From Hyphochytrium catenoides (lineage: Eukaryota; Protista; Hyphochytriomycota), in assembly GCA_900088475.1 (NCBI GenBank), contig FLMG01004237.1:1-44149 (forward strand): DNA of 44,149 bases. The letters run 5' to 3'. The translations under genes and the position numbers were made by a program. The notes below the pieces were generated by a model. That model made no database searches and was not told where the DNA came from. It was given only the letters and a program-made list of their open reading frames with translations. Below are positions 11,689-34,466 of the stretch, one piece after another; the first letter of the stretch is position 1; every line of letters begins with the position of its first letter.

Positions 11689-13335
11689 TCAACAGTAGGA
11701 TACTCCATGACTTGGATCGTACTCCTCCCCTCTCTTTGCGGCTTCTTTTCTTAGCCGTTGCTCCTCTTTCGCATCTAAGAACATGTACCACCTCTGTTTC
11801 CCTCCCTTCTTATAGTACCAATAGACAAACCCAGCAATACCCAGACAGACGACAGCAGTTAGCAGGCTACCCACAACCACCAAGCCGGTAGAGCCCTGGA
11901 ATAACGCCACCAGACCGAGGAGCACCACAGGGATAATTAGGAATATGAGGATAATGAAGAGGACTGCCACCATGGACCATTTCGCACTGAAGAAGGCCAA
12001 GGTTCGTGCCATAGACAGGATGGGCCGCCGCGTAATAGGGATTGGATAGAAGAGAAAGATGCCAAAGAGGTTGAAGAAGAAATGAACTAACGCCACAGCT
12101 ACGGCGTCTGCTTTTCCGGTCACGAGAGACGCCAGTAGCGCTGTTCCTGTTGTGCCGAGATTGGCTCCAATAACAATCGGATAGACTTGCTCTAGAGTGA
12201 TCAATCCAAGACCAGCCATGGGAGTAAGCGTCGATGTGACTATAGTAGAAGAGTGTACGGCGAAAGTCACTGCTGTGCCCACTAGAATGTTGATGTAGTC
12301 ATTGTAGTTCAGTATTTTCTTCACAATCCTCTGGGTTGGCCCCTTCAGCAACTTCGTCAACATTTTCACCAACCCGACCAGGGACGCAATCAACAGAATA
12401 ACGCCAATCACCAGACCGATTGCACCAGCGGCATCATCGCTTAAACCGGCGTTCTTGAGTGCCCCAGCCTTCAGAAAAACTGCATCCTCACAAGCCACTT
12501 TACCCGTTGCCACGTTCTCTATCATCTTTTTGTCAACAACGAGAAGTTTATCGGTTAGAGGCTTGACCACGTAGTCTACAGGGCTGGGAAAAGCGCCGCC
12601 GCTTGCTTTGGCACCACTATCTGCGATCGCACTTGAAAGCTTCTGGAGAGGATGGAAGATGACCTCGAGGGGAAACATAACAATGACAGACCAGATATTG
12701 TACATGTCGTGAACGGTGGCGGCTGCCATTGCTCGTTGGAACTTGGCACGATCCCCAACTTGCCCAAAGGCGACCATGATGCAGGTTACACAGGTCCCAA
12801 TATTAGCTCCCATAATGATAGGGACAGCCTGTTCTACCGTTAGACCCCCGGCTCCAACCAAGGCGACTGTGATCGACGTAACTGTGCCAGAACTGTGAAG
12901 AAGTGCAGTGGCCACAGTTCCTACCATCAGACCAGCAACTGGATTATTAGCAAAGTGGAAGGCTCCCTTTGCCTCGCAGCCCAAGATAAGCGTGAAGGAG
13001 TCGCCAATCCATTTCACCGCCACCATAAAGAAGTACAAGGAACCTACGGCTAAGACAAAGTACCCGAACCCCCAGAGGATTCTCTGCCAAAGTGGCCGCT
13101 TTGAGGTGAACATATCGTCATCGTCCTGCTTCTCCACTGGAAGGCCAAATTCGTCCAGCTCTTCTGCAGGATGCTGCTGAAGGAGGATCTTGTTGTCCTC
13201 CTTGCTTATGTTGCTGCTCCCACCTGGCGTAAGCGTCTGTCGGTAGGGCTGATAAGTGTCGGCTGAGTCAATTACATGGCCAGATATGGGCGTCAGCTGG
13301 GGTGCTGTTCCCTCCTTCCCTGCTTTGATAGTCAT
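11689..13335 (-). CDS. SLC34/NaPi-II (PNaS family) sodium-dependent phosphate cotransporter, intronless, ~548 aa
   Basis: Two inverted-repeat signature units: HSSGTVTS...IMGANIGTC and HSSTIVTS...IGANLGTT. Also AATVHDMYN, ALVHFFFNLFG and multiple TM helices. First ATG is at 13335 (MTIKAG); the ORF-track extension to 13494 uses a non-ATG start. Confidence 0.93.
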   Translation of the reverse strand: MTIKAGKEGTAPQLTPISGHVIDSADTYQPYRQTLTPGGSSNISKEDNKILLQQHPAEELDEFGLPVEKQDDDDMFTSKRPLWQRILWGFGYFVLAVGSLYFFMVAVKWIGDSFTLILGCEAKGAFHFANNPVAGLMVGTVATALLHSSGTVTSITVALVGAGGLTVEQAVPIIMGANIGTCVTCIMVAFGQVGDRAKFQRAMAAATVHDMYNIWSVIVMFPLEVIFHPLQKLSSAIADSGAKASGGAFPSPVDYVVKPLTDKLLVVDKKMIENVATGKVACEDAVFLKAGALKNAGLSDDAAGAIGLVIGVILLIASLVGLVKMLTKLLKGPTQRIVKKILNYNDYINILVGTAVTFAVHSSTIVTSTLTPMAGLGLITLEQVYPIVIGANLGTTGTALLASLVTGKADAVAVALVHFFFNLFGIFLFYPIPITRRPILSMARTLAFFSAKWSMVAVLFIILIFLIIPVVLLGLVALFQGSTGLVVVGSLLTAVVCLGIAGFVYWYYKKGGKQRWYMFLDAKEEQRLRKEAAKRGEEYDPSHGVSYC

Positions 13336-14148
13336 GCTTAGTAGGTGACAGACTCCTCCGGTAGTGCTGAGTGGCCCACGATATAGGACGTTGTAGCAGC
13401 AGCGTAGGCGGCGATAGATGGACACACCAACAAGCAGCTTGTGATAATGACGGCAAAAGGAAGCCGCGTGTTTGGTTTGCACTGGATGAAGCAAAACAGG
13501 GAGTGGCGTAGTCTTGAAGCCAAAGTACCTCCTAAGCCCTCTTCCTCCTACACATTCAGAAGGGAGAAGAGACTCATGCGACGGTTGCTCTGTTATTAGT
13601 AGCCATTCCTATGCCGTCATGTCCTTCTAACGCTGAATAAATCTCCTCCTGTCCTCGTGCTGGGATGTTGCCCAAGAGTAGTCCACTGTGTGGGAGCGTG
13701 TAGTAATAGGATTAGTTAGGAGGACCTTGCATGCTAAGGCCTTATGTCTCTTTGGTTGACTGGTTCAAGAAAGGGAAACTGAGACCAATCTCGTGCTCTT
13801 CCAAGGTTGTTCTACAGCTACTGTATTCTACCCCTTCGATCATGGAGGAGATTCCTTCGAGAGAGGGATTGAATCTTGATGGCCGCGACCTGATTCTGGC
13901 TGTACCTATTTCTAGGCGGTCCTTGTCCAGCTCCGATCCTATCAGTAGGCAAGGCGTCACACTACCCCACCTAACCCCTAAAGAGTGTGAAGTAACAACG
14001 GACTGGCTGACGACTATGCCCAAGTTTTGATTGGTGGATGAGGCTTTATAGAAACATATGAAAGCTGGGAAACTTTCAACCGGAGGATACCATGATTGCT
14101 AGTGCTGTGAGTGTAAAGGTAACTGAAACTTAGCCCTTCGCCCTTTAA

Positions 14149-14653
14149 AGAGCATCTCCACCAGGAGTCTCTAAATGAATCTCTATTGCCGCGTTAGCGG
14201 ATACTCGAGAAGCGATCTGATTGGTCAACGACTGGGAATCCCGTTAGGGGCTCTATAGCGATAGAGTTGCTCCACCCGGCAATGGAGTCAAGTCCGTCTG
14301 TTTTATAGAAAATTCTATCTCTCACCCCAGAAAGCGATTTTGCTGCTGAAACACAGACAAACCTAGCACAATATAAACTCAGATCAAGCCAAACCCATTG
14401 CATCTGCTTCACATAGTTCTAGTGTTCAAAATCACACTAAAATGAAAACCCACAACTGCCTGCAATAGAGACTGAGAGCCGTTAACCGATAATGACGGTC
14501 TCTATTCAGGTACAAAATAGAGACTCACTAACCGGCAACGTGCTTGGTTATGAAAGCTATATAGCGATAGAGACGCCCGGTGGAGCAACGTTTTCACATG
14601 AAAGTCTATATAGCGATAGAGATAGCGATAGAGACCCCCGGTGGAGATGCTCT
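14149..14653. mobile_element. PIF/Harbinger-type (Tourist-like) MITE, ~505 bp
   Basis: 25-bp TIRs: AGAGCATCTCCACCAGGAGTCTCTA at the left end and TAGAGACCCCCGGTGGAGATGCTCT at the right end (23/25 match as reverse complement). GAGCATCTCCA is a typical Harbinger TIR start. TAA on the left flank, ATAA on the right (imperfect TSD). No ORF. Confidence 0.8.
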
Positions 14654-17459
14654 ATAAGGCCTTGGTAAAATGACTATAACAATTTCGAGTAGACCACCAG
14701 TGGATAACTGAAGCGGAAAGCTTCCTTGCGCATTCACTTGAAACATTTCGCTGCGTCGCACCTCCTTTATTCCGCTACGGTAACAACATCATCAAAAGTG
14801 CGTTTTGGTCTACCGTTGTTCCTTGCTTTTGATGACAAGAGTGTCAGTAGATCTCAAGAGAAGAAGTCATCAGCACGGTTCTTCTCAGGGTCTCAGGGTT
14901 AATCTCCAGGAGATCCTTGCCGTTGGTCCGTCTTTTTCTTTCCCTTTCCTCAAACAGAGGGGTCATCTTTGGTAAGGACATTGCTGCTATTGGGGCAGCA
15001 ATGTGATGAAGCTGACGCTGGAGGAAGGTTGAGACCAAACAACAAAGCCCATGATAAAAAGTCTCAAGATTCTCTATAGTGAAGAAATACTCCGACTGCC
15101 TATGATATACTCGTATCAGAATGGTGACAAGCAAACTTCAAAGATTCCTTTCCCTCACGAACGCATCTTGTTAGTCATCATACTATTTGTTGGGTGGCAC
15201 CAACAACAAGCGTAGGTGACACCACTGAACGACAAGACAGTAGTTCTACTCTGAACGACAAGATGTTGCTCTGGCCCAAGCTCTGGCCTAGTTTAAGCCT
15301 TAGTTGTCAGAACTAAGTCTTCCACCAACTGGTTTTTTTATGATCTATGAATGTGAAAACTCAACTTTGAAGATTTATTAGTGGCTAGTGTTGAGAACAG
15401 CACAGAGAACCACTTTTGTGTATTCTTTTATAAAAAAGTTGGTCTTTTCTTCTGAAGTTATAAAGTATTTATAATACAACTCGGCTTCGTCTGCCTTTTC
15501 TTCTATGGAGAGCCCATTCGAAGTCCTTGAAGATTGCCTCGAGTTCTTTGTGGTCCAATGATTGAGCGACAGCCATGAGTGAGCTCTGTCGTCTTTTCCT
15601 CCTCCTGATAAAGGGAGGAAAAGGCAGCCAAGATTATTGTACTTCCACAAAACAGAGAAGTCGGTGCTGCCCAAGCGCCCAAGCACCTCCTCGAGGGAGG
15701 GCGACTATTACTATCTGCTCTTATAGAGACTCGAAGAGAAGAGAATGGCCTCAAACTTGAGAGCAGCTTGGACAGCAAGAGGTCTTCATAAAGCAGGGAA
15801 CATTAGTAGGTTGTCCTTTCTCTAGGAAAGTGACATGCGCATCAGTTAGGCTTTTGAGTTTCTAGTTTATGGCCATAAATCAACGCTCACAACCTGGGGT
15901 GCTTTCTTGTCATCTCTTATCCTTAGCGTGTGGTCTGGGCTAATGCAGGCAGGGAGATGATGGTAATACCTCCCCACATTGACAGCATTGTGGCCGAACA
16001 GTGTGTTTCCATGCAAACACAAGCTCTACCAGTATTTCTACCTCTCTGTGTTTCGTCACCGTTCAAGTTCATGATGTACCACTAACTTAGGTGGACATCG
16101 AGTTGGTTCTTGCATGATTCTAAAATGTGTGTCTCCTCTATTCGTGGATGAACACTGCCGCGATCCTTATCCGTTTCCCGGTTTCCGACATTGAGAACTG
16201 GAAGAAATATTGATAGCTCCTCAGAATGAGGACTCTCTTCGTAGAACGGAGATAGTAGTAGGTCCCAGTGTGGCGGCGGTGCGACTGATGGATTGTTGAG
16301 GCTTCGCCAGCGCGTAATAGGAGAGGTTACAATAATTACGCTGAGTCGATCTCTGCGTTACCTTTTCTGCTACTTCCTTTTTTCATTGGACCACGACCGT
16401 CTCTGGCCTCTTGACTCTGGTGGTTTGAATTGCCCAAGTACTCCTCCTCCGCTTCTTGTGCTCCGTGGAGTGCAAACCTCAATCAGTCAACATCGTGTGA
16501 CTTATTTTATAGTACTTACATACATACTCAGATTAGCAAGAAGAGGAAATGATTGTCCTTTGTGGAGGACAGTAGTCCTCCGACAATATCACAGAAAGAG
16601 CTCTTACAAACACTTACCTGCAGTACTGTAGTAGTCTACCGTAAACGGTCAAAAGCTGCCGCTGGAGGACAACCAAAGCTCGTCCGTCGTAGTACCCGTC
16701 TCCCCCACCACCGTCAATTAAGGAACGACTTGTTAGCCGGCACTACTACCCGCCTTCAGTCCAAGAGAGGGCAAAGCTAGCCTAGCTATTTTATGGGGAG
16801 ATGAACACTTCCACTGACTTAAAGTTCTCATCAACGAGTAAGGAAAGAAGAGTGAGCAGACGTCTTTGTTTGTTGAGGCCTAATAGGATGACGGCTAACA
16901 TAGTACGGTTGGGTCCACGATAGCAGGAATAACGTCACAGGAGGAGTACAGCAGGATATCTCAGGTATGGTGAAGATGCGGTATGGCAGAAGCACAGCGC
17001 TGCACCACCATTAGCCCCATATGTAGCAATATTCAGCTTCTGGCCAAGGGACATGATGGGAGCGCCTAGAAGAATGAAAGTTTACCAGAGGAGCACGGAA
17101 GGGAGGAGCGAAAACAACTATTCTTCAAAAGAAGAGGGAAGGTGAGGGGAGAGGGACTGAATGGAGGGGCGAGAGCGGGCAATAGAAGACAAAGCCATAC
17201 AGAGTGGCAAAACAGAGCCCTAAAAACAACACAGGAGCTCTCCGAGAGTCAACCAGAGAGCGAGAGAAGCACTAAAAACCCACCCTGAAGGTCACAGCAG
17301 CCTGAAGGCCCCAACCTCCGCATTAGATCTAGGTAGAACATCAGAAAGGAAAGGGCTGTAAGGAAGTCAGACAAGTAACAGGTTTTAGTGTTAGGGTAAG
17401 CCTAACGCCGTACAAGGTCGCCGTGCTCTACATACGCCCACGCCTGCTTTTGAGCCTGA

Positions 17460-18357
17460 CTAGGAAAGCGCCTGTGCAATAACCTTCTGATAGAGACCAC
17501 CGAAATAAGTCTCCTTGGACCACTCATACGCCTCTGGATTTGGGCAAAAATCCATGATCTCCTTCTGCCAGAGTCCCTTGGCAAAAGGTTCCAGTTTGTC
17601 AAAGACTAAGCTCATAACAGGCTTGAGAGGATGAAGAGATGAAGGTTCATGGTAGTCCACAAAAACAATCTTCCCACCGGGCTGCAAATTTTGGAAAAGT
17701 GCCTTGACGATATCTCCCTTGACATCATCAGGCACCTCATGAAGCAAGAAGAAGCAGCAGACGGCGTCGAACGGTCCACCCACAGGGGACCGAGCGTCAG
17801 CTCGTGCCAGCGTTACATGAGACAGATCAGAAACCTTGACGCGGACCTGGTCCAGCTGTACTGTCGCCACGTCCGAGACTACTAAGTGACCTGAAGGTCC
17901 CACCCGCTCCGCCAACCGTCTCGAGAAGTTACCGTAGACGCAGGCAGGCTGTAAAACCCGCATGCCGGGCTGGAGCTCCTTGATAGCAATGGTCATCAAC
18001 TTGTTAGCGTTGCCCCACAGGATGGAGGAGACAATGAAGTTGTTATCGAGAATAGGGACGCTCTTTTCACTAAGATACGCCCACGTGTACGTGTCAGATA
18101 AATAGGCTGGAACCTCAGGGGGTGAGGTTCCCTGATAAACATAGTCAGAGCCATCATAGCTTTGNNNNNNNNNNNNNNNNNNNNNNNNNNNNNNNNNNNN
18201 NNNNNNNNNNNNNNNNNNNNNNNNNNNNNCTTGTCTGCAGCTGACGGATTGTCCGAGATTCCTTGGAGAGAGCCGCGCGCCGTCTCTGCTTAGTAAGAGC
18301 ACTCAGCAGTCTCTGAGTATCTCGGGCATATCTTAGTGCTGCCCCGGTGGTAGACAT
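17460..18357 (-). CDS. rquA: Rhodoquinone biosynthesis protein RquA with predicted mitochondrial presequence (spans N-gap 18165-18229)
   Basis: VPAYLSDTYTWAYL...ILWGN, the RquA-type degenerate SAM motif LQPACVYG, FFLLHEVP, PGGKIVFVDYH, HPLKP, LEPFAKGLW and KETYFGGLYQKVIA. Upstream of the gap, ATG 18357 gives the Arg/Ala/Ser-rich MSTTGAALRYARDTQRLLSALTKQRRRAALSKESRTIRQLQT. Frame across the gap cannot be verified. Confidence 0.9.
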
Positions 18358-19016
18358 GCTCGCTCTAAGATTTTCGGGTGCTGCTGATAGGGCAGAACAG
18401 ACCGCAGAGGAATGGCCCAAACCACCTAAGAACGTTCTAAAACGCGCTGGGTAGCTACGAATGTCGGCTTCAGATTATGCCGGTGGAGCGGCAGAGGCAG
18501 TGGCAGAACTGTGGCTTGTTGGGAGCTGGTTGGAAGTTTGATGTGTGAGCTGATTGCCAACAGCACAGCTGAATGTAGTATCAAAAAGATTTGCGCTGTT
18601 GTTATCAGTGGGCGGTAATGGTAGGAGCGCTGGCGGTGGGAGGAATGGAGAGGCATTGGAGACTGGTTTCTGTGCTTTCCTTCACACAGTTGATGAAGTT
18701 TTGGCCTCTGCTAATTATTGTCCTGCTTTCTGCTTCATAGCTTTTCGACATTGATCATCTAGCAGCTGCCCCTTGGCTGGGTGCAACACAATCCTACCTC
18801 CAATCTTTCTCCTCACTCTTCTTGTTGTCTGTTTCAAGCGGCTGTGCGCGGGGTGCGTACGTGTAGCTCCCCATTAGTATGTACGCTTGGCGTTGTCCTC
18901 TGCTCTTCCTTCCTTGGGTTGGCCACATCTCGTGTCGTAGTTCGACAGTTGTTCTTGCACTCTTCTTTAAAATATACTACGCCGTCTTTCATTGCAATGC
19001 CTCTTTCCCTCCAGTG

Positions 19017-19935: not shown

Positions 19936-21567
19936 ATGAGAAGACTGCTGGTTGGACCACGGCTGGGAGCTGGCTACAGACTCTTAAGCTCTGCAATAGG
20001 CCACGGGGAGGTGAGGCCTAGTAGGCAATATACATCACCAACCAACGGCCCATGCGCAGGAGCCTCATTTCTGGACACCAAGGACTGCTTTGATTACTCT
20101 GACTTCGGTCTACCAGTGGACTGTCTACCCGGGAGCAGTCTCGCATCATATAGCCTTCTTCGTGCCAAACGATCACTAACCTCACGGCTCACCACCCTTC
20201 AGGAAGAGTCCTCCTTGAAGGAGGCTGTGGAAGTTCTTGAGGTGGAAGATGCCGAATACTATCTTTTAGACCACCTAGCTCAGCATGGTTCGCTACCAGC
20301 CCAAGCCTGGGGCGTTATCCTCCAGCGATATTGTGAGCAGCAGGACCTTGACATGGCATGCTATGTGTTTGACTATCTGCAGAGTCAGGCGGATCGGCCG
20401 GTGGCAGAGTACTATCATACAATGATTCGGGGATTCTGTAAGGCTGGTAGAATGCAAGATGCTCGTCAACTTTTGGACGTGATGACAGAGGCTGGAGTGC
20501 CGCAGGATAGGGACACCCTCTGCTCTATGTTAATAGGTTTAGCTTCACTCAAGGACTCAGAGGGCATAGACAAAGCCCGAGCACAACTGCAGGAGAAAGG
20601 CTGGGACGTAGATCAAAGGGCAGCAAAAGCACTTCTGACTTACTACTCGGAACGCGAAGCACTATCCCAAGCAGAGCTTCTCCGAGACTCTTACATCGCT
20701 ACGGGGGGACAACTATGGGACATCCGGACTCCTCTTCTTAGACTGTACTTGCAGGTCAACGACAAGCAGAGGGTTGCAAAGTTGGCTTCTTCAGTGTATC
20801 AAGGCGCTGCAGCGGCCGGACCTGAAGTAACGGATAGGATGACCTTCGCTGTCATTGCGCTATGCAGTTCAGGCGATCTGGTTGCTGCTCAAAAACTAAT
20901 GCTGGAGGCGCTTGACCTATTTACTACTGATCGGCGTATGACGGCTGCGATTGTCTGCCTCTTAGACCATCTTCAGCGCTCCGAGCGACACGACGAGGTC
21001 GAGGCATTTGCTTCCAAAGTGTCAGCTCTTGAGCTTGAGGACTGCGGTGGGTTATACAAGGCTCTTGCACACTCCTTGTTGTCAAAGGGCAACACTGAAG
21101 CTGCGGAACAGTGGATTGCGAAGCTGAAGCGGTTCAACGACAAGCTATTGCCCGAAGACCTATACGTCCCTTTAATAAGAGCGCTCTCCGCTAAGGGGGA
21201 GATTGCGCAAGCTGCATCTCTCTTGGGGGACATGAGAAGGAGAGGCTGTGCTAGAGAAGAGGCTGTGGCCGTCGTTATTCAGCGCTGCTGTGTGGAAGGC
21301 CGCACACAAAAAGCTCTCCAGCTATTTTCTACCATGTTCACTGCTGGCATTCAACCCACGGCACGCACCTTGCATCCACTGATCCTTCATCTGGCGGAGA
21401 CGGGGAACGTTCCTAGCCTCATTGCTCTATTCAGTAAGCTGGACAGCTCGTCGCCGTTCCGACCTCAGACATCTGATGTGCAAAATATAACCAAACTGCT
21501 TCTACGAAGGGGCTTAAAAAGAGAGGCATACACTCTAGGCTCTATTGCTCAGCAGTCCACAATGTAG
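19936..21567 (+). CDS. Pentatricopeptide repeat (PPR) protein, probably mitochondrial, intronless, 543 aa
   Basis: P-type motifs such as YHTMIRGFCKAGRMQDARQLLDVMTEAGVPQD, YVPLIRALSAKGEIAQAASLLGDMRRRG and VIQRCCVEGRTQKALQLFSTMFTAGIQP. N-terminus MRRLLVGPRLGAGYRLLSS resembles a presequence. Confidence 0.9.
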   Translation: MRRLLVGPRLGAGYRLLSSAIGHGEVRPSRQYTSPTNGPCAGASFLDTKDCFDYSDFGLPVDCLPGSSLASYSLLRAKRSLTSRLTTLQEESSLKEAVEVLEVEDAEYYLLDHLAQHGSLPAQAWGVILQRYCEQQDLDMACYVFDYLQSQADRPVAEYYHTMIRGFCKAGRMQDARQLLDVMTEAGVPQDRDTLCSMLIGLASLKDSEGIDKARAQLQEKGWDVDQRAAKALLTYYSEREALSQAELLRDSYIATGGQLWDIRTPLLRLYLQVNDKQRVAKLASSVYQGAAAAGPEVTDRMTFAVIALCSSGDLVAAQKLMLEALDLFTTDRRMTAAIVCLLDHLQRSERHDEVEAFASKVSALELEDCGGLYKALAHSLLSKGNTEAAEQWIAKLKRFNDKLLPEDLYVPLIRALSAKGEIAQAASLLGDMRRRGCAREEAVAVVIQRCCVEGRTQKALQLFSTMFTAGIQPTARTLHPLILHLAETGNVPSLIALFSKLDSSSPFRPQTSDVQNITKLLLRRGLKREAYTLGSIAQQSTM

Positions 21568-21811: not shown

Positions 21812-24503
21812 TCAAGGGATTGGGTGCACAGCTGCTCTAGAGCTTCCTTTACCCTTCGAGCCCTCAGGAACTCTCTGTTCGGCACTATCAGATGAGGTTA
21901 GATGGCTTTTCCTGCCCTCTTCCTCTCTCTTCCTTACGCAAAGAAGCAACTCCTCATACTCCGTTATGATACACTCCGCCAACAGCGATGGATCAGGGAT
22001 GTAGAGTGGATCCACCGAGATAGCAAACCGGACCACATTGTTATAGCTCATAATGCTGATCCCAGTGCTTAGACTGGCAGGGCAGGTGCAGTTATAGAAT
22101 GAAGACACCCCGTAGCCCGCAAAGTAGATCTGAAGGAGAGAATATGAACGGTTAGGAAGCGGCTATCTATTTTCCTCACAAGCTCTAGCGGCGGATGGAA
22201 GCGAGCAAACCTACTTTCTGCTTGGGCCCTGCCAGATTCGACTCGAAGAAAGTATGCCTCGATAGGATTCTACACATCAGCCACTTGCATAGTCCAGGAC
22301 CGAAGAACCAGCCTAAACAACGATTCGCATAGCTGTCGAGAGATGGGGGAGACAGTGAGTCAGAGGCTCCACGTAGTAGAGGAGAGTAATGTTGCAACAA
22401 GCTGGTGGGAGGATAACAAAGGCAAAGAGGAACATAATATCACACCTAGGAGGACCAAACGCGACACAGAAGGACGGAGGTGCATCTTCTGACCTCAGAA
22501 TAAGCGGCTCTGGAGACCGCTTTATCCTGCTTGATTCCTTCATCGCGTGGGCCACGCGGTCGACCGGGCTGCACTGATGCACTGGTGCGTTGACGAAGAA
22601 CATGCTAATGTTGTTGTCGACAGTCCCTTCCCGGTACCTCTGCAGCAAGCCCTTCAAATCGTTCAAGCTCTGCAGACTCCAGAGATCAACCAGCACTACA
22701 GCTCCCATCCGGAGCTTCGTACTAACCTGGCCGCCTTCACTATCTTTCCTATTAGCTAAGTACCTACAAAGCAAAAAGAAGACAACAGCGTGTCGTCAGG
22801 GAAAGCAACAATACGCCACGATGCATTGATGAACCCTAGGGTGGCGGACACTTCTTTGAGTTTGGGGACGAAGGACCTTCCGTCAGCTTGGGCCAGAAAG
22901 ATTTCCCAAGGAGGTCAAGAGAGGAAGAACTAATAAAGGGAATGCTGCCTCGCCCCTCCACTGAAGAACGTGACATCAAGTTTACTACGATGGGAAAGAA
23001 AGGAGGAGAGTGACTGATATGGTAATCCTTCTTCTAAGATCTCCCTACCTTCTAATCCCACCGCCCTGGACCGCAAGCATAACGTCATTGACGGTAGCGC
23101 CAAGAGCACGACCGATCTCTTTGACATCGTTCAACTGAAGTTCTCTGGAGAAGTGAACTCGCTTCTCCGATTCACTGTAACGACCGACACGTATGGACAT
23201 CGCTGTCACCTCATCCGCCGGCGCTAAGGGAATAAGCAGCACCTTGAAGAACGCCACTAGTCCCAGCCAAAGGATCTCTAAGAGAGAACCAAAAGAAGTA
23301 AGAAGAGAGACACAAGTTCTCGCGTTTGCCACATCATCATCTGTAGTTTTCGTGTCCCCTGAGCCAGCCGCCGTCGTCAATCCCTGCTTCTTGCTCTGTA
23401 ACTTTTTTTCTCCTTGTGGGATCTCCTGTCCGAGTTGCGATCCGCTGCTGTCGGTGGAGAGGCTCAGTAGTAGAGCAAGGAGCATGACCCCGTCGCCCAG
23501 GCAATGACAGATCTTGATGACCAAAGCGGACTTCCCAACGGAAGGCGAAAGAAGAAAGTGCATCTCCCACCGTGGGAGCGAAGGGTCAAACGGCTTCATC
23601 ATCATCGTGGAGACGTAGTCGTCGATGCTACGACGAAAAATGACCTTGCCGGATCCCTCTGCTCCGTCTCTCCTCTCACCGATCGTGGTGATGGTGGCCA
23701 TGGGTCGAATGTCCTTGAGCATAATCTTTTCAAAATACGGCCTGCCCCTCCCTTCATAGCGCAGAATTGAGGTGAACCGCGGATAGTGAATGATCTCCTG
23801 CGTTAGGAAGTGAGGGAAGCAGGGTTGAGAATATTAGGTAGGATGTCAGATGTCAACCGGAAGGGCTTATGTCATCATCAGCAGGGCAGAAGGGGCCGCA
23901 AGCACGAGGCCGACATCGTTCTTAGAACTGGAAGAAACAAAGGTACTAAGGCTTTCACATGGCAGACCAACTGTAAGAAGCAGAGAAAGAAGGTTGAGGT
24001 AGACCACGGATGACAGCCATATGGCCGGTTCCATAATCTCTTCAGCAATGAGAGGACAACGAGAAAGCGACAAGAGACAGGGGAGATAAAGAGGTGTGAA
24101 AGGAAAGTGAGGGAAAGAGAGTATGTCTCACACAAGCAGAGAGAGGGAACCAGAGAAGAGTGCAGAGGGGGCAAAGAGAGTGTTTAAAGATGAAGAGAGT
24201 CACACCTCAAGCCGTACACAAAGCTACAGAGACTGGAATTAAGCAACAATAATGTATGCGAACGAGGAAGGTGCCCCAGCCGAACAGAACTAAGGAAGCC
24301 AAGGTAAAAATGGAGTCACGACAGCAAGTAAGCTGAACCTTTTGAATAAAGCCAATCACCCGTTCAGGGTCAATCAGCTCGTCGAACTCCATCACTCCGT
24401 AGATCGTGGCCGGCTTCTTCTCCTGATACATTTGTATCCAGATCTTCCCAATGAGTGAAACATCATGACGCTCGCCGCCCGTCATGGATGTAGCCACGGC
24501 CAT
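21812..24503 (-). CDS. WS/DGAT family wax ester synthase/diacylglycerol acyltransferase (WSD-like), 5 exons
   Basis: Exons ~24503-24339, 23797-23049, 22763-~22493, ~22333-22215 and ~22130-21812 join in frame with GT-AG. Motifs HYPRFTS, PFDPSLPRWEMH, CHCLGDG (HHxxxDG variant), GATVNDV, SNLAGP and SIMSYN. Confidence 0.88.
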
Positions 24504-32017: not shown

Positions 32018-34466
32018 ATGCGGCGGCTAGTGTCAGTAGGCTGCAGGCCCTGGCCGTCGTCCCACTCCTGCAGGACAGTGACGGTCCCGTTTGTGTCTGG
32101 CTGGAGGCCAGCAGAGCGGCGCACAGGAGGCAAAGCTGGCTCTCTGGCATTTGGGACCAAGAGACAAGCTGCAGGACCACTTGCACTCTGGGGACCGTCT
32201 TCTGTTTCTGTTCCATGGCAAGAGAATGAAAGTAGCGCGAAGAACTTATCCAAAGGCTCAAGATCGGCCAGGCGGTCTTTCTATTCTGCCGCTAGCTCAG
32301 GTCTTTACAAGGACTTTTCTTCCTAGAACCTCTTGGCAAGATGCCCTCTTGTCCTCTCTCATGACCTTCCCTTCCTTCAACTACCATACGGTTACCTCAC
32401 AGTCTCGCGCTTACCTGCGGCGTCTCTCCTTCCTTCTTTCACCGCCTGATCCCCTCTTTTCGGTCTCCAGTCGCTCTCAACCTGTTCTTGCTCTACTTCT
32501 CACTCTCCCAGTACTGCTCTTTAAGCTGACGTCTCTCTACCTCTCTGTCTTCCTCATTGAATTCCTGGCTTTCTTCAGAGACGTCCCTGCCTGAACTCCA
32601 TATCACTGTGGAGAAGGAACGCTGTCGCTTCCCTCTCCCCATTCCCCACGAGGGGCAAGAGACGGACCGCATCTTTACTCTCTCTTTCGGTATGATGGAA
32701 AAGGAGGCATTGCCCTTGTGCTCTGATGAGGTTGATGAGAACAATGCTGTGTGAAGCGAGGAGAGAGAAAGAGAAGAGAGAAAGATCAACCATCGAGCCC
32801 AGGATACTTTGAACCGGTTTTAATCTTATCTTCTACTTTCCCAGACACTACCGTACAGCAGATAGTGGAGATGGTGAAGGATGAGGACAAGTCCCTCAAG
32901 TCAGTCGAGTTCTTTCGGGGAGGAGACCAGATCCCGCCCACCACTGAGCTGCAGGACCTTCTTCGCAGCCCGTTTGTCCTCATGGTCAACGGACAGCCTT
33001 TCCTGGTCCACCCGCCGCCCTATCTAGGTACGCATCGAGCGGCATGAAGGGAATAGCNNNTGCAATTATCCGCGTCAGAAAGCTATTAGAAGCAGATCCC
33101 CGATCCAAAATGCGTTACAAGGTCGCCAGTCCCTTACGTTCACCCTATTTGTTGCTTTGTCGTCCGCTGTCTCTCTCGCAACTTTTCAGAGAACCCTAAC
33201 CAAGTCGTCTTCATAGGAGTTCTTAGATCTTTGTCAGGCGAACGGAGTACCGGAAGCCCAAGCTCGAGAACTAAGTCGCTGCTTGCACTCTGCGGGCCTT
33301 GTCCTGCATTTCCACGGGGTACGTGCCCTGAGCCCTATGCCAAATTTTGTGACACAGTATATCTCCCCGTTATTCTGCCGTCCACAGCACCTTGCATCAC
33401 GAATCTTCCCCACCCTTAGCTCTAATGTGCTAAGGCACTCTTAATTCATGCTTTGCGCCTTGTCGTCATCCTCACTGTGACCTCCTTGGCGTTTAGGTGA
33501 AAGACGAACTGCTTCGAAACACTATTTTCTTGAAGCCAGAGGAAGTTATCGACCGCCTATTCAAAGATATGGGCTTGACTTCACCTACTGAACATCTGGC
33601 GAGAGACGAGGTGGGTGAATCGCTCTATGTGCCACTCTCTCTCTCTCTCTCTCAAGAGACTTTCTGAACTCTCCCTTCAGACCTTAGGATACCCTATCTC
33701 GCTTATTCTCTCCCTTATGCGTTGCACGGCTCTGATGTTCCTTCTTGAATCTTTCCGACGAAGGCTGCCCGGAAGCAACAGCATCTGAAGGAGTTGGAGC
33801 TGGAGCTAAACCCTATGCTCGCCCATCAGACACACCTGGACAACATCGCCAGACAGAAGGCGACTAGGCTGATGTGGGGCATGGTAGGAGGTGAGTACCC
33901 TGTGGCTCATCCCCAAATCATTCCCCGCCTTGTGTTCTCTACCTTGGGCAAATTCACTCTCCCAGTTCGCTCCTTTGATAGCTGTTACTTGCTCCAACGC
34001 ACAGTCCTTTTCCAGAGCACTGACCCTTGTGCGACCGGAGGCAAAGCCACCTTCTTGCCGTGTGTTGTCGCCACTAATGCTGTCTTGGCCTTATGGCGTT
34101 CTATCTTCTCTGCGCGTAGGCCTTTTTAGCTTGGGCGGTGTCTACTGGTACCTGACCTTCATCTACTTCTCCTGGGACATTATGGAGCCGGTCACATACT
34201 TCACGGGCGCTTCTCTTTCTCTTCTCTCCTGCGTCTGGTGGACGCTAACCAACCGTGAGTACGAGTATGAGAATATTTATGACTATGCCTTCAGAAGGGC
34301 ACAAGAGAGGGAATACCAGCGCTCGGGACTGGATCAGGAGAAGATCGATGAGCTAAAGAAGGAGGTCGAGCAATGCCAAAGAGAGATTGATACTCTTCGG
34401 CTGAAGAAGCACCATCCTGCCATAGTAGCTGCTTATCTCTCCAGGAAGGGCTTTGGCATCTTATAA
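32018..34466 (+). CDS. MCU: Mitochondrial calcium uniporter MCU (~8-9 exons; alternative short first exon possible at 31791-31810)
   Basis: TM1-WDIMEPVTYF-TM2 (DIME selectivity filter) in the last exon (34120-34466), with flanking coiled coils. N-terminal domain exons at 32579-32689, 32845-33027, 33217-33318, 33497-33610 and 33764-33890. Arg/Ser-rich presequence. Small gap at 33058-33060. Confidence 0.9.

Follow-up and report, generated by a model that had tools for sequence, protein, structure and literature searches.

The hyphochytrid stramenopile Hyphochytrium catenoides appears to possess an apparently intact nuclear rquA gene, located within the 44,149-nucleotide stretch of contig FLMG01004237.1 (here referred to as the window). 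We place the probability of this reading, with the gene as described below, at roughly 0.8. RquA is the lone gene that allows a ubiquinone-based respiratory chain to turn to fumarate as an electron acceptor, and its scattered occurrence is a standard example of how lateral transfer remodels mitochondria. The enzyme uses SAM and Mn2+ to exchange a methoxy group of ubiquinone for an amino group, which produces rhodoquinone. Both this reaction and the patchy, laterally transferred distribution of rquA among protists are already well described (PMC5953543, PMC9814641). A survey from 2018 found the gene in five stramenopiles, with Blastocystis, Proteromonas, and diatoms named in the text, and counts oomycetes among the lineages that are without it (PMC5953543). 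More recently, a 2026 preprint has reported rquA in freshwater sponges, and it also mentions Quaeritorhiza (bioRxiv 10.64898/2026.04.08.717022).

No paper in the literature that we searched pairs a hyphochytrid name with rquA or rhodoquinone, which agrees with the suggestion of a first-pass annotation, made from the DNA letters, that this organism represents an unrecorded RquA-bearing lineage. The H. catenoides genome paper nowhere mentions anaerobiosis or quinones (PMC5795050). The hyphochytrid copy adds a lineage that is not listed in the reference survey and that is sister to the oomycetes named there as being without the gene. The features that define the gene and its surroundings are compiled in Table 1.

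Table 1. Features of the rquA locus and neighboring genes, in window coordinates
Feature	Coordinates	Strand	Remarks
Na/Pi cotransporter	11692-13494	-	Between rquA and satellite; contiguous with rquA
rquA downstream coding part	17460..18164	-	234 codons: last 17 residues of the N-terminal extension and the whole RquA catalytic domain
rquA stop codon TAG	17460-17462	-	Ends the uninterrupted 234-codon frame (17463-18164)
Asp codon equivalent to R. rubrum RquA Asp143	17796..17798	-	Pairwise mapping onto P0011
Asp codon equivalent to R. rubrum RquA Asp118	17871..17873	-	Pairwise mapping onto P0011
Atypical motif I, VLQPACVYG	17931..17957	-	RquA-typical substitute for the canonical glycine-rich loop that binds SAM
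Assembly gap	18165..18229	.	Written as 65 N; real length 100 bases (X1, X2, and X3 contigs)
rquA 5' coding part	18230..18357	-	ATG at 18355-18357, 42 codons, and 2 bases of the next codon
PPR protein gene	19936-21567	+	Head to head with rquA at a distance of 1.58 kb
Wax-ester synthase/DGAT gene	22313-23722	-	Exon 23048-23722, Pfam WS_DGAT_cat 1.8e-13; within 6 kb
Mitochondrial calcium uniporter exon	33891-34463	+	Pfam MCU, 2e-19; just past 33057

Enzyme family and catalytic residues

The 234-residue translation of the downstream coding part scores 295.6 bits (E = 2.2e-88, profile positions 1-217 of 218) with the NCBIfam RquA equivalog NF038261, named "rhodoquinone biosynthesis methyltransferase RquA," for which the curated cutoff is 175 bits. 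NCBIfam equivalogs for UbiE/MenG score between 24 and 41 bits on the same piece against cutoffs of 216 to 420, and the best three of them reach 40.9, 40.4, and 38.6 bits where the cutoffs are 378, 235, and 420, respectively. Pfam recognizes only generic class I methyltransferase domains, among which Ubie_methyltran is a weak match at 29 bits. An AlphaFold model of the domain piece, based on a 12-sequence alignment, has a mean pLDDT of 90.6 and a pTM of 0.89, and its top Foldseek matches are all SAM-dependent methyltransferases of the class I fold (probability of 1.00); we found no solved RquA structure for comparison.

The residues that set RquA apart are also in place. In a column print over 113 aligned RquA relatives, the motif VLQPACVYGNFS, ACVYG included, is the same as that of Rhodospirillum rubrum but for one residue just after the motif. 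Motif I of RquA has been described as divergent (PMC5953543). Two aspartates of R. rubrum RquA, Asp118 and Asp143, are key residues required for RQ synthesis in vivo (PMC9814641), and their equivalents are kept as Asp98 and Asp123 of the 234-residue piece. UbiE, MenG, and Coq5 have the class I SAM-dependent fold in common with the window protein, but the glycine-rich motif I is replaced in the latter, and RquA transfers an amino group rather than a methyl group (PMC9814641). Judged by its sequence, the encoded protein is a genuine RquA rather than a UbiE-type methyltransferase. The full set of RquA motifs that the first-pass annotation had read here is thereby upheld by the family model and by both aspartates, and the protein falls inside the RquA clade (see below) rather than with UbiE or other methyltransferases.

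The founding and biochemically characterized member of the family, RquA of R. rubrum (PMC9814641), shares with the window protein the same motif I, the same aspartates, and the NF038261 equivalog, and the two are 59% identical. They differ at the N terminus, where about 40 non-conserved residues in R. rubrum stand against a putative basic extension of about 95 residues in the window protein, and in their hosts, since the former gene is bacterial and the latter is nuclear and eukaryotic with host-like codon use. The domain aligns free of gaps with both bacterial and eukaryotic homologs and therefore lacks an intron, in agreement with the earlier remark that none was visible.

Reading frame across the assembly gap

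The gene as written in the assembly is broken. Upstream of the gap, 2 bases remain after the 42 codons, and on its downstream side a new codon opens at 18164, so only a gap length of 1 mod 3 keeps the frame. With the 65 N of the assembly, the phase is wrong and the two pieces are out of frame. This break probably spoiled the gene model and caused protein-based surveys to miss rquA in this organism. The protein collection contains no 100%-identical protein of H. catenoides. Other gapped draft genomes may conceal similar genes.

We aligned read contigs from three runs of the same organism (X1, X2, and X3; two samples from one study) on positions 17300-18700. Contigs of each run link 18164 to 18230 with 100 letters between them, a bridge known by its length and not by its letters. 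Since 100 is 1 mod 3, the bridge adds 34 codons and, by length alone, joins the pieces into a single frame of 42 + 34 + 234 = 310 residues. The first-pass annotation had raised the prospect that the gap breaks the frame, which is true of the 65 N as written and, again by length alone, untrue of the 100-base bridge. A random stretch of 34 codons is free of stops only about 20% of the time, and the gap-length argument for a joined frame is supportive, short of conclusive. A stop or a short intron may lie inside the 100 gap bases.

The read contigs of the three runs also show two haplotypes across the aligned region, which fits a highly heterozygous diploid. Within the domain, the haplotypes differ at 10 positions without any indel or stop. 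Seven of these differences are synonymous, where a synonymous share of 23% is expected by chance (p of about 0.002), and three are nonsynonymous, one of which exchanges Gly for Arg (codon 150 of the 234 in the piece). That the allelic differences are mostly synonymous indicates that the frame is under purifying selection. Upstream of rquA, the haplotypes differ at about 3 to 6% of positions; among the differences in the 5' flank are the loss of one base at 18447 and an additional TTA after 18601.

These data bear on whether the locus could be a decaying or silent copy, in which the gap hides a stop or a frameshift, or the domain is cut off from a usable start, so that the cell makes no working enzyme. 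A silent copy would accommodate the out-of-frame assembly, a 100-base gap known by length alone, the three nonsynonymous allelic differences, and the outcome that none of the listed runs is on record as RNA of this organism. We nevertheless regard such a copy as improbable, as the gap length observed in three runs brings the pieces back into frame, the domain of 234 codons is uninterrupted and scores far over the family cutoff, its alleles differ mostly at synonymous sites with neither indel nor stop, and the catalytic aspartates are kept.

A nuclear gene in a eukaryotic genome

The bridged gap in rquA is the only run of N between 5976 and 33057, and overlapping read contigs span both flanks of the gene. 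The Na/Pi cotransporter encoded on the same contiguous sequence has 58 to 68% identity with Phytophthora, Pythium, Saprolegnia, and Aphanomyces proteins, and this equal closeness places the host as a sister of crown oomycetes. The GC content of rquA is 0.51 with a GC3 of 0.58, and its RSCU correlation lies inside the range of the neighboring genes, which show that the genome is rich in introns elsewhere. rquA is a nuclear gene of the eukaryotic host. The first-pass annotation had likewise called it eukaryotic and had described the organism as one that keeps conventional mitochondrial features; contiguity with an oomycete-like transporter and a PPR gene, host-like codon use, and two alleles as in a diploid agree with the former, and the PPR gene and the MCU exon on the same scaffold with the latter.

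Bacterial contamination or a scaffolding error, or a UbiE/MenG-type C-methyltransferase mislabeled as RquA, might be read into a domain without introns whose closest relatives outside the eukaryotes belong to Rhodospirillales and are 59% identical, but we dismiss these possibilities on the contiguity with oomycete-like host genes free of N between 5976 and 18164, the contigs that overlap across both flanks, the host-like codon use, the relatives at 66 to 74% identity with eukaryote-style extensions, the related copy that sits among HSP90, L23, and WD40 genes, and the UbiE scores of about 40 bits, far under their cutoffs.

One part of the first-pass annotation is not supported, namely, its placement of rquA at the edge of a subtelomeric zone of transposable elements as a plausible landing site for a transferred gene. 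The Na/Pi cotransporter gene, a conserved host gene, intervenes between rquA and the telomere-like satellite, and ten open reading frames of at least 90 amino acids in the first 17 kb (1-17 kb) matched no Pfam family, transposon-related or other. Repeat scans picked up nothing beyond a 13-nt satellite (1-1000), simple repeats, and a single inverted repeat of 45 nt (14145-14657). Because its GC3 and codon use match those of its neighbors, rquA bears no mark of a recent landing.

The two repeats merit a brief description. The satellite at 1-1000 is degenerate (CCGCTGCCATAAC / CCGCTGCCCTAAC), with telomere-like CCCTAA units intermixed and a strong skew of C over G; it has the appearance of a subtelomeric array at the end of the scaffold rather than of a clean telomere. 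The inverted repeat has 45-nt arms that are 80% complementary (14145-14189 and 14613-14657) and lie 423 nt apart, and it sits in the stretch poor in open reading frames between the Na/Pi cotransporter gene and rquA. It could represent the ends of a small non-autonomous element.

N-terminal extension and predicted import

The 42-residue piece encoded at 18232-18357 reads MSTTGAALRYARDTQRLLSALTKQRRRAALSKESRTIRQLQT and starts at the ATG at 18357, the first in its frame after an upstream stop. It contains 8 Arg, 2 Lys, 1 Asp, and 1 Glu, with a net charge given as +8, and is rich in Ala, Leu, Ser, and Thr. Its helical hydrophobic moment reaches 0.63 over the 18-residue segment at residues 7-24, a value that 6% of shuffled sequences attain. 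As judged by composition and amphipathicity, the peptide fits a mitochondrial presequence. The Arg-rich N terminus pointed out by the first-pass annotation is evident in these counts and would belong to a long basic extension of the kind found in other full-length eukaryotic RquA proteins. Every full-length eukaryotic RquA has a predicted targeting signal, and RquA of Pygsuia has been localized to the organelle (PMC5953543). By analogy, the H. catenoides protein would also be targeted to mitochondria.

The extension that precedes the TYTW motif would be 100 residues long if all 100 gap bases are coding, and it measures 78 to 95 residues in the relatives P0001 to P0005 and P0095 and 44 residues in R. 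rubrum. Local alignment of the 42 residues with six homologous extensions was no better than alignment with shuffled sequences (z of about 0). We had considered that the presequence is homologous to the extensions of these relatives and dropped this idea, as the likeness is one of composition only.

A functional enzyme with another gene model also has to be weighed, in which a short intron or alternative exon sits inside the gap, or another start codon is used, so that the mature protein might be made without the 42-residue peptide and would not have to be mitochondrial. The extension slightly longer than those of the relatives, the N-terminal piece without detectable homology to theirs, and the intron-rich genome would all suit this model. 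Still, we consider it quite unlikely given that the gap length is exactly in phase, that the ATG at 18357 is the first of its frame and opens a peptide of presequence-like composition, and that the genes of the close relatives consist of one exon, as seen both in transcripts and in the genome of Quaeritorhiza.

Proposed role in oxygen-poor conditions

In the reading that we favor, an intact nuclear rquA, the gene would encode a protein of about 310 residues in which the complete RquA domain follows some 95 residues of basic extension, made up of a putative mitochondrial presequence and a linker. Imported into mitochondria, RquA would convert part of the ubiquinone pool to rhodoquinone, which has a lower potential. 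When oxygen is scarce, electrons from complex I would then pass by way of rhodoquinol to complex II running as a fumarate reductase. Mitochondrial import together with hypoxic use of rhodoquinone is likely, with somewhat less confidence than we attach to the gene itself. Expression of the gene, production of rhodoquinone, and a facultatively anaerobic lifestyle would follow from the same scheme, and we infer them from the locus. H. catenoides can be cultured, so rhodoquinone is directly measurable in this organism.

Relatives of the hyphochytrid RquA

A word-index search of the protein collection with the RquA piece yielded 2,079 relatives. The best of them are two transcript-like Logan contigs, P0001 and P0002, at 74% and 73% identity, and a EukProt transcript, P0003, at 69%. 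Three proteins of the fungus Quaeritorhiza haematococci are 54 to 60% identical, and alphaproteobacterial RquA proteins reach 59% and lower, with R. rubrum at 59% across the whole domain. The closest relatives (66 to 74%) all have N-terminal extensions of the eukaryotic style. The nearest bacterial genomes belong to Rhodospirillales, Kiloniellaceae, Caenispirillum, Phaeovibrio, and Terasakiella. Although the collection is rich in oomycete proteomes, no oomycete protein is found among the best 120 of the 2,079 relatives.

Eukaryotic RquA proteins have been divided into group A, which comprises Pygsuia, Blastocystis/Proteromonas, euglenids, paramoebids, Mastigamoeba, Copromyxa, and Brevimastigomonas, and group B, which comprises diatoms, ciliates, Monosiga ovata, and rhizarian amoebae (PMC5953543). 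Proteins of both groups belong to the same enzyme family as the window protein and share its inferred design, with a mitochondrial presequence, a patchy distribution, and a lateral origin. As eukaryotic anchors, we included Copromyxa protea (P0246), Mastigamoeba balamuthi (P0342), a euglenid-type sequence (P0290), Paulinella (P0281), and the diatom Fragilaria (P0394), which came from an exhaustive representative search and cluster look-ups; P0246 and P0290 were matched by eye, as Copromyxa and as euglenid-type, to sequences in the supplement of PMC5953543.

A phylogeny of 50 rows, in which several rows are representatives and the anchors leave out named Blastocystis, Proteromonas, and Pygsuia, places the window protein, P0001 to P0003, and the three Quaeritorhiza copies in a eukaryote-only clade with support of 100/98. 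This clade nests with the R. rubrum/Pararhodospirillum group and Terasakiella with support of 95/93, and the other eukaryotic anchors lie outside the latter group. The tree, built with bacterial and eukaryotic RquA as the first-pass annotation had proposed, puts the window protein inside the RquA clade. The AU test rejects a clade that unites the window group with the group B diatom RquA (p = 0.012), and it also rejects a single clade with five other group A eukaryote anchors, namely, Copromyxa, Mastigamoeba, a euglenid-type pair, and Paulinella (p = 0.005), a grouping that was set after the tree had been seen.

The members of the eukaryote-only clade resemble one another beyond their position in the tree. 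The Quaeritorhiza copies and P0001 to P0003 show identities of 55 to 72% in the multiple alignment, have long N-terminal extensions rich in Ser, Thr, and Arg, and are all single-exon. Quaeritorhiza has the motif VLQPAAVYG and three paralogs, in contrast to VLQPACVYG and the one copy seen in the window. One of the Quaeritorhiza genes is a single exon amid genes for HSP90, ribosomal L23, and WD40 proteins, indicating that the sister group of the window rquA is eukaryotic too.

Lateral acquisition

The clade ties a stramenopile to a fungus. Because stramenopiles and opisthokonts are different supergroups, the grouping of the window and Quaeritorhiza genes cannot be due to simple vertical descent. 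Nesting of the clade among Rhodospirillaceae and Terasakiella points to a lateral acquisition of rquA that is separate from those of the other eukaryotic RquA groups tested, as far as the sequences tell. In a fuller scenario, eukaryotes would have received rquA one more time, and independently, from a Rhodospirillaceae/Terasakiella-like alphaproteobacterium, and the gene, with its extension already present, would then have passed between unrelated zoosporic fungus-like osmotrophs that include the hyphochytrid stramenopile and the fungus Quaeritorhiza, plus further protists. We offer this joint scenario tentatively, at somewhat short of an even chance. Should it be true, presumed ordinary aerobes would respire fumarate with the help of rhodoquinone where detritus or host tissue is poor in oxygen, and H. 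catenoides would provide the first recorded respiratory chain of a facultative anaerobe in the oomycete/hyphochytrid group.

Two further observations concern related loci. On the Quaeritorhiza contig JADGJF010000927.1 (L086 1-791 and 7001-7873), a gene for a UbiA-family prenyltransferase is found about 6 kb from an rquA copy, with HSP90 between the two. It possibly encodes the COQ2-type step of ubiquinone synthesis. In addition, run X5 (2024, organism B), for which the library type RNA is a guess, contains a 214-nt contig over 17890-18101 that is 97.6% identical to the H. catenoides rquA and differs from it at one nonsynonymous and two synonymous sites. It may come from a near relative, either a strain or another species, in which rquA is likewise present.
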